Positions 15,201 through 57,900 are shown, counted from the first letter of the stretch. The stretch: DNA of 64,000 nucleotides from Octopus sinensis (GCF_006345805.1 NW_021833435.1:1-64000); one strand, 5' to 3'. The notes: generated from the sequence alone by a model not told the origin. A program made the numbers and translations.

Positions 15201-18200
15201 TGAGTCACTATCAGAACTTGAGGAGAAGTTTCAGTGAAAAGGACACAACTAAAGTTGTAACATTCCTCTTAAATTATTTATGGCAGTGGATCTCAAGTGG
15301 GGTCCATATGAGATTTTGTTCATGAAAAAAAATCATGTGAATTAAATTGGTTATATTTCTATAATAACACAAAATATTTTAATATCTTTTATATAATTCC
15401 AAATAATATTTAATTATAAAAATATAAATTGTTTTTAAACATAGAGAAACATTATAAAAATATATAAACATATTTTAAACAATAGGCGCAGGAGTGATTG
15501 TGTGGTAAGTAGCTTGCTTACCAACCACATGGTTCCGGGTTCAGTCCCACTGCGTGGTGCCTTGGGCCGACCAAAGCCTTGTGAGTGGATTTGGTAGAGG
15601 GAAACTGAAAAGAAGCCCGTTGTATGTATGTATATACATATGTGTTTGTCCCCACCAACATCGCTTGACAACTGATGCTGGTGTGTTTACATCCCTATAA
15701 CTTAGCGGTTCAGCAAAAGAGCCCAATAGAATAATTACAAGGCTTACAAAGAATAAGTCCTGGAGTCGATTTGCTCGACTAAAGGCGGTCCTCCAGCATG
15801 GCCACAGTCAAATGACTGAAATAAGCAAAAGAGTAAATATATATACACACACACACACACACACACACATAGATATACATTCATACAAGTGTTGCATATG
15901 CACATATATATCATCATCATCGTTTAACGTCCGTTCTCCATGCTAGCATGGGTTGGACGGTTCGACCGGGGATCTGGGAAGCCAGAAGGCTGCACCAGGC
16001 TCCAGTCTTATCTGGCAATGTTTCTACAGCTAGATGCCCTTCCTAACGCCAACCACTCCGTGAGTGTAGTGGGTGCTTTTTATGTGCCACCTGCACAGGT
16101 GCCAGGCGAGGCTAGCAACGGCCACGGTCGGATTGGTGTATTTTACGTGCCACCGGCACGGAAGCCAGTCGAGACAGCGCTGGCATCGGCCACGAGTCGG
16201 ATAGTGCTTTTTACGTACCATCAGACCAGGGACCCTGGCTGGTTCAATTCGATTTCGATTCGATTTCGCTTGCCCCAACATGTCTTCGCAAGCAAAGAGG
16301 TTTGGCATGGGTGCCTGTCGTCGGATGAGGTTCTATATCGACTTCGCTTGCCTCAACAGGTCTTTGTGTCCAAGGGAGGAAAGGCATGCATAAGTGGGCT
16401 GGGCTCACTTGTCCTGCCTGGTCTTCTCATGTACAGCATATTTCCAAATATGCTATACACACAGGTTATATATACAGGTTATATATACATATACACATAT
16501 ATGCTGGCATGGCGCCATGTAATGTGTATGAATGAAGATGGTTGCATGAAAAGGTGTTGGTCTCTAATTATAGAGGGAACATGTAAAAAGAGTAGACCCA
16601 GGAAGATGTGGGATAAAGTAGTGAGAAAGGATCTATGAACGTTGGGACTTACAGAAGGGATGACAGGGGAGTGAGACTCTAGGTTTGTTGCACTTGAAAA
16701 GACACATCAAGCTAAGTAAAAACGTGGTTGCCCTTGCATGCAGGCTTGTCGCCTGCATCCCTCTCTAGTTGAGCATTCCAAACTTTGCAGTCTGGTAGGT
16801 GCTGGTGCCATGAAGAAAGTACCCATATCGGTACCACATAATGCACCCATGCTGGTGCTGCTTTGTTTGTTTGTTTGTTGAGCAAAGCGTTCTTCGTCCC
16901 AGAGCTCGCAAGATCGCCCCTCAGGATTGTCTGTAGTCGGAGAAGTAAGAAACGTGGTCCTTTGCTATTCATAAGACCTGCAGAAGAGAAAGCAGGTCAA
17001 CCCCCGACACCGAGAGAATCGACGGATAGATGAATGCGCATCCAGGCTCAGCGGCTGCGTAGGAAGTCGGGGACAAGAAACAGGAAGAAAGAATGAGAGA
17101 AAGTTGGAGCAAAAGAGTACAACAGGGGTCGCCACCACCCCTTGCCGGAGCCTCGTGGTGCTTTAGGTGTTTTCGCTCAATAAACACACACAACGCCCGG
17201 TCTGGGAATCGAAACCGCGATCCTCCGACCGCAAGTCCGCTGCCCTAACCACTGGGCCCTTGCGCCTCCACTGCTGGTGCTGCTTAAAAGCACCCAGTAC
17301 ACTCTGTAATGTTAGGAAGGGTATCCAGCCATAGAAAGCATGCCAAACAGAGGTTAAATGATGATGATAGCAGAAGGCAATAATACAGTGAGACAAGACA
17401 TGTGGGTAGGAGATGCACAGGTCGGGGGCAAGCAGAGAGCAATGATACAGTGGCACCGAGCCAAGAAGATAAGATCAGGGAGTAGGAAGTAATCATAGTA
17501 CATGAAACAGAAATGTGAGGAAGAGATGTAAGTTCGCACAAGTTACTTTCTTTTAAAAAGTATTTGTTTTAAATCGAAGATTTATGTATGTGCTGAATAT
17601 TAGCTCACTCCCTCCATCAAATCGACATACTTGTACAGGTGCACAACATGCCACATGTCAGATGAGGAAATGCTTGCGGAGCAATGTGAAATGAAGTGTT
17701 TTGCTCAAGAATACAATGCCATACTCTTTTACTCTTTTACATGTTTCAGTCATTTGACTGTGGCCATGCTGGAGCACCGCCTTTAGTCGAGCAAATCAAC
17801 CCTGGGACTTATTCTCTTCTAAGCCCAGTACTTATTCTATTGGTCTCTTTTGCCGAACCGCTAAGTAACGGGGACGTAAACACACCAGCATCGGTTGTCA
17901 AGCAATGCTAGGGGGACAAACACAGACACACAAACACATACATATATATACGACAGGCTTCTTTCAGTTTCCGTCTACCAAATCCACACACACACACACA
18001 CACACACAAAAAAGAAAAAAACTTACAGGACTTTTAGCAGATTTGTATGCTAAATTCCTTAATTCCAATCCCCTTCGTAGCTGAACACCTTGGATTATCT
18101 TTTGCAATCTTTGGTTTGGTATTCTATAAAAACACTGAAAAGTAGAATAGAGAGCAACACCACCAACAATAATAATAATATTAATAATAATAATAATAAT

Positions 18201-54900: not shown

Positions 54901-57900
54901 CCAAGTCAATTGGTCTCTTGGTTAAATCATAGGCCTTTTGACAGCCAGTGAGAAGGATCAAGTTAACTAATCAATTAGTTTCAGCTTTTGTTAAAGCCAT
55001 CGTCAGGATTTGATTACTTGTTTACTGAGACACAAAAGTGTGCACCACTGACTGAACCAGACCTGACCTAATTTACATAAATGTTGCTAGAGTGGTTGAG
55101 CGTATTAATGAACTGCTACACTGACACAGCATATATGAGATTAGCTTCATAAACAGTTCCAATTTTGTATTTAATAAGCATATCTATATTCCCGTATGCC
55201 CATGGGCATATGGCGTAGTGGTAAAGAGTGCAAGCTACTAACCTCAAGATTCCGAATTCGATTCTAAGCAGTGACCTAAACAATAATAATAATAACATTG
55301 AAAAATACCTTAGGAATGAGAACCCAGGTTCGAAATTTCCCCAAGATAACTGAAGAAGGCTGTATTAACAACAAAGCTGAAGACAAATATCCGTCAAATG
55401 TAAATAATGTACATAATTCCTCATCTCTTAAATATAAAACTGTAATATCTATATCCATCTGCCTATCTGGCTATCATCTTCATCATTTTAATGTTGACTT
55501 CTCCATGCTTGATTCAACTACTTTGAATGCTTTACAGTTAATATGGTTTACAAGAGCTGCTGGCTCTGTTGTCAGTATGATATCTGCCAACCAGCTGAAG
55601 AGTCAGAGTTTATACTCTGTAAGCATTACTGCTCTATGTTTACAATGAAGGCACTTTACTCTGTTACATATCATAGACTGGAACTGTCTACTCCAGTAAT
55701 CAGCATCTACATTATATAAGTTCTAAGATCCTTATTTTCGTTTCTGCTGCCATCATTCCACACTGGACTCAATATTAATGAATGTAAGTTATATATCTTT
55801 TTCTCATTTGATGTTTTATCTTTTCAGGGGAATGTCCCTTCATTAATTGGTTTACTAACGAAATATAAGATGCTGCAGCCTGATAAATTAGGGCTGTCAC
55901 TTCCAAAATATCAAGTAATTTTCTTTTTGTTTTTTCCATTTTTTTAACTATCAGTTTTACTTACACAAAGCTGCAAACACATAATGCTGTGCTCCAGCAT
56001 GGCCTGAAATATATATACATAAATATTATTACTGCCATTTATTATCATTTTAAAGGCAGGTAACTGACAGAATTGCTTGCAAACCAGGCAAGATGCTTAC
56101 TGTAAATCCTTGAGTATAATCCGCATTTTTTCCCCAAAATTTAAAGGTCAAAATCCTTAGAGCATACTATGTACAAGGTTAAAAATGAAAAATATATTCT
56201 AAGCAATGTCCGAGTCTCTATTTGCTGTTTGGCAATGTTTATTCAGACGCATTTTGTGATGTCGGGCGCGAAAATACCTTAAGCTAAGCCTGAAAGCAAT
56301 GAAGTCATAAAAGAATCATCTATAACTTGCAGTAAGCAACATTTATTAAAATAAAAGTATTCAGAACACAGAATAACATGTAACAAAAACAATTTGCAAA
56401 CATATTTACATTCCCATATAACAGTTAAGAACATCACCATTATTGTATTATGCATGCGCGGAAGTGTTTGTTCGACTGGCTTAATTACGCACGACTCAAG
56501 TTAGAGAAGGAGTGTGTATTATACACAAGGTTTAGGTTTTCCAGAGGTACAGCCCCCTAAAAATCTCCTGCGTATTATACTCAAGGGTGGACTATACTCA
56601 AAGATTTACGGTAATGGTATTTCTCCTGTCTCTTCACATCCCAAGTTTGTTATACAACCAACAACTATGTTCTTTTTTATTCATATATCAATTTAATATC
56701 ACGCTATCGATATACAGCTGATTTAGTGCCTTTTGACATCTTTCTGCATCTCTATCTTCTCCAGGAAGCTATGCAATTCATCTTCTATGAGGCTAGTTAA
56801 TTTTTCAAATAATAGTAAGCATGGCAAAACATAGATCTATATTTACTAATCTACCCTCGCTTTTCTTTATCCGTCTGTACTTGCACTGTATGCCAGGTAC
56901 ATGCATCACAACCACACGTGCAAAAATGGTGACCTCCTATCAAGACAAAATGTGCATGACATTACAGGTGGGGACCGAGTTTGAATTTTCTTCGGATTGA
57001 GTAGCCCCTCATGCTCAAAAGGTCCCTGAATAAGTGCTGTTTAAGGCTAAGGAATAAAACACCTTTGTTTCCACGGGTGAATTATTCAAGCACCCCCCCC
57101 CCCCCCAAACCCTCTCAATACATGGCTATGATGCTCCCTCACTATTCTTGCTTTGATCAGAGATGCACATATCGTCAGCCACTAAGGGACATGCTCAACT
57201 GGTTGTGGTGAAACAGATGACAAGCAAATCTGTGGTATTACCGAACATGACATTTGCTGTGGTCCATTTTTTGTACCAAGGCAAAACCTGTTTATGTTAA
57301 CACTCCCAATCAGTTAACATCAGAAGCCATGAGAACTGCTGCCTCTTATTGCATCGGGGCATTTATTATTATTATTAGTAGTAGTAATTCCTCTTGCTCT
57401 TTAATTTTTGAGTTCAAATTCCTCTAAAGTCAGCTTTGTCTTTTGTCCTTTCAGCATAAATAAAATAAGCACCAGCTTAGATGTAATCAACTAATCCTCC
57501 CCCATTGAAAATTGCTGCCCTTGTGCCAAAATTTGAAACCATTGTTGTTATTATTATTATTATTATTATTATTATTATTGTTGGTGCTCTCTATTCTACT
57601 TTTCAGCGCTTTTATAGATCACCAAATTCAAAAATGCAAAAGATTATCCAAGCTGTTCAGCTACGAAGGGGACTGGAATTAAAAGCTTTAGCACAGAAAT
57701 CTGTTAATAGTCCAGTAAGGTTTTTTTCTTTTCTTTTTTTTTTCAATGTTTTTATCTGTCTTTGATTTTAAAAAAATACTGTCGAGATTAAGTTACATAT
57801 GCTAACATGCTAACTTAAAGATAGCATTTTGGCAGTGACATATATAAGTAAATCAATTATCCAGAGTATATTTTTTGTGTGAAGTAAGTAAAATATATTA

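Follow-up and report, generated by a model that had tools for sequence, protein, structure and literature searches.

How can two adjoining copies of one gene be nearly identical in some exons and strongly diverged in others? The question is raised by a stretch of 64,000 nucleotides of Octopus sinensis DNA (the window), which corresponds to positions 1-64000 of contig VCDQ01001672.1 (72,928 nt; assembly GCA_006345805.1) and is identical to it over the overlap. The window carries two copies, A and B, of a gene for the kinetochore protein CENP-I in a large palindrome. A sequence-only reading of this DNA had proposed an old duplication that was later overlaid by arm-to-arm gene conversion. The proposal is supported by the mosaic divergence of the arms, by a run test, by flat divergence between orthologues in two octopus species and by tracts confined to a single species. 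An old inverted CENP-I duplication has very probably been overwritten in patches by arm-to-arm gene conversion, both before and after speciation.

Structure of the palindrome and identity of the genes

Self-BLAST of the window yields a single large inverted duplication, and an inverted collinear chain of 25 blocks pairs both arms. The palindrome is imperfect and lies for the most part in the window, and the gene copy in each of its arms looks complete. The layout is as follows.

1..32264, minus strand: left arm with CENP-I copy A, exons E1-E13, transcribed leftward (from self-BLAST, chain and exon model)
32265..32771: spacer of 507 nt, unique, the palindrome centre; the arm homology has its inner ends at 32264 and 32772
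32772..64000, plus strand: right arm with CENP-I copy B, E1-E9 in the window; the arm runs on to contig position 72928

Genes A (minus) and B (plus) are arranged head to head. Their start codons lie 2.2 kb apart, and this interval, which encloses the spacer, is presumably a shared divergent promoter region. The central orientation is the same in Octopus vulgaris (96.3% over 2610 nt). The arms extend over at least 32 kb in the window, and about 50-60 kb are alignable in O. vulgaris. Between the two O. sinensis arms, 1039 substitutions at 14,172 aligned sites give a divergence of 7.3%, i.e. 92.7% identity, with zones from ~82% to 100%.

Both products match Pfam PF07778 (CENP-I/Mis6; cut-off 23), A with 105.6 bits (E 3.8e-30) and B with 107.9 bits (E 7.4e-31). 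Residues 92-735 of human CENP-I (PDB 7pkn_I and others) align with residues 49-697 of the B protein P0009 (705 aa; E 3.4e-57). NCBI names both products 'centromere protein I-like' (A is XP_036355443.1, B falls in a second cluster). Judged by homology, both copies are members of the CENP-I/Mis6/Ctf3 family. A homology search with the full nine-exon protein matched octopus proteins, and a search with E7 and two guessed exons gave no match. The annotated 518-aa models on this contig are cut by the contig ends and finish in read-through sequence.

The exon coordinates are recovered by a search for splice-flanked, open, homologous segments of the lengths and mismatch counts given in the sequence-only reading, which yields one phase-consistent chain. 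All nine hand counts of exon differences are reproduced exactly. The exons are listed with nucleotide differences between A and B per length (A on the minus strand, B on the plus strand).

E1: A 31477-31579, ATG at 31579; B 33803-33905, ATG at 33803; 18/103; N-terminal 34 aa with 12 aa changes
E2: A 27097-27228; B 42459-42590; 3/132
E3: A 24032-24162; B 49640-49770; 11/131
E4: A 22744-22851; B 50964-51071; 1/108
E5: A 21238-21333; B 54122-54217; 1/96
E6: A 19700-19786; B 55828-55914; 2/87
E7: A 18027-18134; B 57607-57714; 21/108; basic 36-aa segment with 11 aa changes
E8: A 14866-15033; B 60948-61115; 7/168; boundaries from the NCBI protein
E9: A 13663-13783; B 63910-64000, cut by the window and complete at contig position 64030; 4/91, and 5 differences over the full 121 nt
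E10-E13 of A: 10249-10331, 6934-7051, 4364-4428 and 3107-3226; the B partners lie beyond the window

The range of 18027-57714, for which the mosaic was first described, extends from the outer E7 end of the left copy to the outer E7 end of the right copy, with E8 and E9 outside it. A left gene on the plus strand that begins at 18027 is ruled out, as the exon translates on the minus strand and 18027 is the outer end of E7. A good acceptor precedes this exon, and a GTAAG donor follows it on the outer side.

All four copies (A and B of O. sinensis and O. vulgaris) have open frames throughout E1-E13, without stop codons. In O. sinensis, all acceptors are AG and all in-window donors are GT (read for E1-E7 and E9; the E8 boundaries are those of the NCBI model). 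The ratio of non-synonymous to synonymous divergence (dN/dS) between the orthologues of the two species is 0.26 for A and 0.24 for B, which, together with the absence of stop codons, indicates that both copies are constrained. With open frames, intact splice sites and purifying selection, A and B qualify as a functional duplicate pair and not as pseudogenes. E5 (96 nt, in-frame; 54122-54217 in B) is skipped in the annotated B isoform P0003 (486 aa). E10 (10249-10331 in A) is a third hot exon, situated outside the E7-to-E7 range, that differs from B at 7/83 nt with 5 aa changes (dN/dS 1.8 on tiny counts).

Mosaic divergence along the arms

The B arm is projected onto the A arm through the collinear chain of BLAST blocks. 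Values for 8.3-11 kb, outside the E7-to-E7 range, are unreliable, as the chain from E10 to E12 paired dispersed repeats and not E11. The sliding identity profile of the arms is strongly mosaic and not uniform, as the sequence-only reading had described it by eye. In 64 non-coding bins of 200 aligned sites, the number of differences ranges from 0 to 59 (chi2 857, 63 degrees of freedom, p ~1e-139; index of dispersion 12.5). Segmentation with a two-state hidden Markov model (HMM), based on substitutions only, divides the arms into alternating old zones with 13-18% divergence, which reach ~22% in single windows, and converted zones with 2-4%. In left-arm coordinates, from the centre outward, these are as follows, with the outermost stretch of the A arm added as the last line:

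28389..32264, pairs with 32772-40387: old, 15.1%; centre, E1 and most of intron 1; 33% alignable
26869..28388, pairs with 40388-42853: converted, 2.4%; E2
24574..26868, pairs with 42854-49424: old, 18.4%; intron 2, exon-free, with a 30-nt minisatellite inside
19691..24573, pairs with 49425-55922: converted, 2.2-3.2%; E3-E6; broken by a haplotype-specific patch at 22931-23010 and a (GA)n array at 20997-21054
18643..19690: old, 16.7%; intron 6, mostly an arm-specific mariner-like insertion
18135..18642, pairs with 56101-57606: converted, 4.4%; 3' portion of intron 6, as far as the E7 acceptor
15269..18134, pairs with 57607-60713: old, 13.0%; begins at the first base of E7
14712..15268, pairs with 60714-61265: converted, 2.5%; E8
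13809..14711, pairs with 61266-63884: old, 18.2%; intron 8
1..3750, outermost A arm: 1 difference to B in ~3.7 kb in O. sinensis (with the second contig described below); 1.4-11% in O. vulgaris

BLAST identities with gaps counted follow the same pattern: 76.8-77.6% beside E1, 80.7% at 18010-18375 (which includes E7), 90% at 19.58-20.17 kb and 94-96% at 20.16-24.32 kb. The inverted-repeat pair around E2 (I2, 26918-27677) is 98% complementary. The 30-nt minisatellite of intron 2 has ~9 copies on the left (26280-26558) and ~18 on the right (43133-43662), and it inflates the divergence of the hot zone.

A permutation test of the GENECONV type, which had been named as a check on conversion, gives p <= 2e-4 in O. 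sinensis as well as in O. vulgaris. Unbroken matches extend over up to 71 consecutive variable sites in the former and 18 in the latter, whereas 5000 permutations produced no run longer than 13 and 11, respectively.

By eye, the sequence-only reading had found that the introns follow their exons in identity. This holds for E1, where the exon (17.5%) and its flanks (17.1%) are equally diverged. It does not simply hold for E7, which differs by 19.4% versus 5.8% in the alignable part of intron 6 (substitutions only; p 3e-4); in O. vulgaris, the values are 20.4% and 7.3%. E9 differs by 4.4% versus 17.4% in the adjoining old intron, a conservation that purifying selection predicts. Placement of E9 inside the old zone is weakened by the HMM boundary at 13809, just upstream of the exon. 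E3 differs by 8.4% versus 1.1% in its flanks in O. sinensis. It was considered as an isolated old island and rejected as such: with E3, the old intron-2 zone reaches its outer end, and a tract found only in O. sinensis begins just past the donor of this exon.

Probable conversion across octopus species

The O. vulgaris chromosome OX597823.1, an independent chromosome-scale assembly, also has the two genes head to head, and the boundaries of its zones almost coincide with those of O. sinensis. Its A-B differences in E1-E9 amount to 17, 5, 9, 0, 1, 3, 22, 11 and 5. The orthologues of O. sinensis and O. vulgaris differ by 2.5% in A and 2.7% in B. For A and B, respectively, the orthologue divergence is 2.4% and 3.6% in hot bins and 3.6% and 2.3% in cold bins, and its Spearman correlation with A-B divergence is -0.42 and +0.09. 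Since orthologue divergence is not raised in the hot zones, local mutation rate is not the cause of the ~eight-fold difference between zones. Divergence that merely tracks the local mutation rate, which the sequence-only reading had named as the outcome that would speak against it, is not what the orthologues display: their divergence is flat or inverse.

The comparison of all four sequences provides 709 informative sites. Orthology is supported by 661 of them (A with A, B with B), 42 are concerted (grouped by species) and 6 follow the third pattern. Clustering of the exons by copy had been expected for E1 and E7, and clustering by species for E4-E6. The former is found, with 16 A/B sites in E1, 21 in E7 and none of any other pattern. 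The latter is not visible in the exons, as E4-E6 hold only two informative sites and too few sites vary between sister species. In the introns, clustering within species is visible as single-species tracts and concerted sites. At 23.2-23.7 kb, A and B differ by 1.0% in O. sinensis versus 7.2% in O. vulgaris, and 18 sites there set vulgaris A apart from the other three sequences. This points to copying of B onto A in O. sinensis. The adjoining segment at 22.7-23.2 kb displays the reverse (6.9% in O. sinensis versus 1.8% in O. vulgaris). At 2.2-3.7 kb, the copies are identical in O. sinensis (0%) versus 1.8-6% apart in O. vulgaris, and 20 sites have the concerted pattern.

The locus is also covered, from the same start point, by a second O. 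sinensis contig of 107.6 kb, VCDQ01001647.1. The A arms of the two contigs differ by 0.28%, almost only in patches that bear the variants of the other arm. These include 27 sites at 22931-23110 and a reciprocal swap at 4036-4123. The contig-specific patches are either polishing artefacts or conversion events in which the haplotypes differ. The outermost 1.1 kb of the arms (2580-3700 with 71808-72928) overlap with 100% identity up to the right end of the contig. The common contig start and the near-identical outer 3.7 kb (1-3750, with contig positions 71180-72928) suggest that the assembly broke within a very recent tract or that a repeat was collapsed.

In Octopus bimaculoides (CM046610.1), the annotated gene begins at E8 beside assembly gaps, and upstream of it the opposite strand bears E10 and E11 in inverted orientation. 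The plus copy has a 365-nt intron-8 segment that is otherwise found only in B, and around E8 it is 7.2% from B and 11.7% from A. Around E10, the two O. bimaculoides copies are 6.0% apart versus 8.9-11% from either O. sinensis copy, and the minus copy leans to A. These segments suggest that the duplication predates the split from O. bimaculoides and that conversion acts in that lineage too. The O. bimaculoides locus at 1-10700 has gaps (5959 N in the locus) where E1-E7 of both copies are expected. In the annotation, the first exon of protein XP_052827189.1 is spurious and the inverted second copy is missing.

Together, these comparisons support the following history well. The duplication is old, as the unconverted parts of the arms are ~6x as diverged as O. 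sinensis from O. vulgaris and ~2x the distance to O. bimaculoides. Repeated non-allelic conversion from arm to arm, in kilobase-scale tracts and in both directions, has very probably followed. The shared cold zones (2-5%) would be tracts older than the split of O. sinensis and O. vulgaris, and the younger tracts would be those confined to a single species or even to a single assembled haplotype. The type of zone would then be the main determinant of how far an exon has diverged, modified by purifying selection. E2 and E4-E6 lie in converted tracts; E1 and E7 lie in unconverted sequence by homology breaks and encode segments that are probably weakly constrained. That the molecular mechanism is conversion and not double crossover we infer from these patterns, and the same applies to the reasons why particular segments escape.

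Why E1 and E7 stay diverged

The sequence-only reading held that the N terminus and the basic segment of E7 escape homogenization, possibly because their difference is selected. Both exons lie in unconverted zones, and several observations bear on the cause. Between the paralogues, dN/dS is 0.72 in E1 and 0.66 in E7. The synonymous divergence dS of 0.26 and 0.31, respectively, about equals or exceeds that of old non-coding sequence. E7 has 6 synonymous differences where 1.5 are expected from the intron rate (P 0.0045). This excess marks E7 as part of the old stratum, with the inner boundary at its acceptor, and not as a burst of amino acid changes in a young background. The arm homology stops 46 nt past the E1 donor (31431) and 17 nt past the E7 donor (18010); beyond the latter break, intron 7, the outer flank of E7, is without any arm homology.

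The escape may be purely mechanical, an explanation to which we give close to an even chance. It states that conversion tracts seldom take in segments bordering on the spacer or on arm-specific insertions, as homology is missing on that side, and that divergence below the identity needed for recombination then locks the state. The unalignable gaps fit, with 2538 nt on the left and 343 nt on the right after E1, and 1929 and 2682 nt after E7. Old zones are 15-58% alignable, apart from intron 8, compared with 69-99% for the converted zones in the E7-to-E7 range, and the zone boundaries are largely common to both species. However, block length and identity are only weakly correlated (rho 0.39, p 0.05 overall; rho 0.43, p 0.11 within the E7-to-E7 range), and in the old zone of intron 8 (13809-14711) a divergence of 18% goes with 93% alignable sequence. 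Conversion also erases insertions, which makes cause and effect ambiguous.

Alternatively, selection could keep E1 and E7, and perhaps E3, specific to each paralogue, so that overwriting conversions are purged and old zones persist there. We consider this rather unlikely. It draws on the contrast of E7 with its adjoining intron, which recurs in O. vulgaris, and on that of E3 with its flanks in O. sinensis. In A as in B, E1 and E7 hardly change between species (4/422 nt, 1 of the changes non-synonymous), and dN/dS between paralogues (0.56-0.72) exceeds that between orthologues (~0.25). On the other hand, dN/dS in E1 and E7 stays below 1, the synonymous sites of E7 are as diverged as old non-coding sequence, E1 equals its flanks and three other old zones are exon-free. 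Both exons lie less than 50 nt from a homology break, which provides a mechanical reason for escape. The coincidence of tract ends with exon edges is moreover partly circular, as a tract end by definition adjoins the first retained difference. Given the dN/dS values, the high dS, the exon-free hot zones and the homology breaks, selection on the difference is only a possibility. In our reading, the position of the homology breaks combined with weak constraint is enough to account for both hot exons. Conversion across them may be selected against, with E7 as the most plausible case.

When the protein is aligned with human CENP-I, E1 belongs to the N-terminal tail outside the alignment, and E7 corresponds to residues ~257-299. 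We take this to be where the N-terminal HEAT domain ends and the linker begins. Octopus might possess two functionally distinct CENP-I proteins, distinguished by the E1 tail and the basic E7 segment, that are kept apart by selection against conversion at these sites and kept in step by conversion elsewhere. We consider this improbable. With distinct functions, one copy might act at meiotic or germline kinetochores and the other at somatic ones. If true, the pair would be a natural example of conversion-limited subfunctionalization of a core kinetochore subunit.

Alternatives to conversion

Several points weigh against an old duplication reshaped by conversion. Some of the hot sequence is minisatellite (26280-26558) or dispersed repeat (28287-28728) and is aligned with uncertainty. 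No GC bias is found among shared alleles (244 strong versus 220 weak, p 0.29), in a comparison whose classes are confounded by private mutations. The O. bimaculoides evidence consists of ~270-440-nt pieces of a gapped assembly. Assemblies and not reads are compared, and short-read polishing of a long-read assembly can copy variants between repeats that are 95-98% identical. The finest O. sinensis-specific features, namely the 100% identical contig end, the patches that differ between contigs and the common contig start, could be assembly artefacts.

A different explanation takes the inverted duplicate, or just its near-identical parts, as an artefact of mis-joined haplotypes, fold-back reads or paralogue-blind polishing. 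The window does come from an unplaced contig of 72.9 kb, the second contig has the same start, the chromosome-level O. sinensis record holds only partial gene models and the outermost 1.1-kb overlap of the arms is 100% identical up to the right contig end. Such an artefact is nevertheless highly improbable. The arms are 7.3% diverged overall, each has transposon insertions of its own, and the arrangement and mosaic recur in the independent chromosome-scale O. vulgaris assembly. An inverted copy is present in O. bimaculoides as well, and the 661 cross-species sites group A with A and B with B.

That no conversion took place and that mutation rate or constraint simply varies along arms of the same age has a negligible probability: constraint would account for the low divergence of E4, E6 and E9 relative to their flanks, but non-coding zones differ ~eight-fold, orthologue divergence is flat or inverse to A-B divergence, the segment at 23.2-23.7 kb is young in one species only and concerted-pattern sites are present.

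Repeats and other elements in the arms

The arms harbor further elements.

18857-19114, plus strand: mariner-like transposase fragment (Pfam HTH_48, E 2e-5), situated in the left-arm-only insertion 18646-19580 in A intron 6
44935-48804: right-arm-only insertion of 3.9 kb in B intron 2, with minus-strand retroelement-like frames and one weak zf-RVT match below the Pfam cut-off
29060-30840, A intron 1: inverted repeat of 29302-29615 versus 30435-30748 (98%), composed of 155-nt tandem units, without a right-arm partner
14657-15399 and 60585-61320, opposite strand to E8: frame with a reverse-transcriptase-like 'YADDLAL' motif (15007-15234, plus strand), without a match in Pfam
2105-2506, 5317-5642, 9270-9651, 11436-11858, 15481-15844, 17726-17992, 28287-28728, 40055-40489 and 61321-61675: SINE-like dispersed family of ~400 nt, 75-90% alike, in both orientations
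1121-1308, 6065-6250, 12745-12935, 15910-16100, 36553-36737, 44347-44512 and 60415-60584: second dispersed family of ~190 nt

Rfam and tRNA scans of the window gave no match, the dispersed families included.

Comparison with known systems

Palindromes with arm-to-arm conversion are known from the human Y chromosome (P1-P8) and from the X chromosomes of primates and mouse (PMC3723533, PMC8327919, PMC8981503, bioRxiv 10.1101/800185). The octopus locus resembles these sex-chromosome palindromes in its long inverted arms of more than 8-10 kb, its short unique spacer and the protein-coding gene in each arm. Further common traits are conversion tracts of several kilobases in either direction, concerted evolution once species have split and a structure that is conserved across species. 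In contrast to the mammalian arms, which are >99% identical, the octopus arms are 92.7% identical and retain old strata beside converted ones. No GC bias is detected in them (in the confounded comparison above), and the order of the chromosome accessions suggests an autosomal locus. CENP-I is a constitutive part of the kinetochore and does not belong to a testis gene family. The likeness to Y palindromes drawn in the sequence-only reading is thus apt for the mechanism but not for the degree (92.7% versus >99.9% identity).

Interlocus conversion between linked duplicates yields mosaic paralogues, for example the globin and opsin duplicates of primates. As in these, homogenized and anciently diverged segments alternate in the octopus pair, tract ends lie near exons with paralogue-specific residues and both copies are under purifying selection. 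Unlike them, the octopus copies are inverted, head to head and joined by a presumably common promoter interval, and the tracts are mostly located in long transposon-rich introns.

CENP-I is usually a single-copy gene. Duplications of centromere and kinetochore proteins are known for CenH3, CENP-C and KNL2, as in CenH3/Cid of Drosophila (PMC5435080), CenH3 and its partners in Caenorhabditis (PMC9577544) and KNL2 of plants (PMC9210943). The octopus pair is similar to the CenH3 and KNL2 cases in that a normally single-copy centromere protein is kept as two constrained paralogues that differ most in the N-terminal tail. In the library that was searched, no paper links CENP-I with octopus.

The process is a known one in a new gene and a new animal. 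Two constrained CENP-I copies in octopus are relevant to kinetochore evolution. The palindrome explains why the locus breaks three octopus assemblies, and the 518-aa 'CENP-I-like' annotations serve as a warning of truncation at contig ends. Compared with the systems above, the locus offers a comparatively well-controlled case of conversion in an old inverted duplicate outside vertebrate sex chromosomes, with two sister species, an outgroup and two assembled haplotypes, in which a single gene displays old strata next to young ones.

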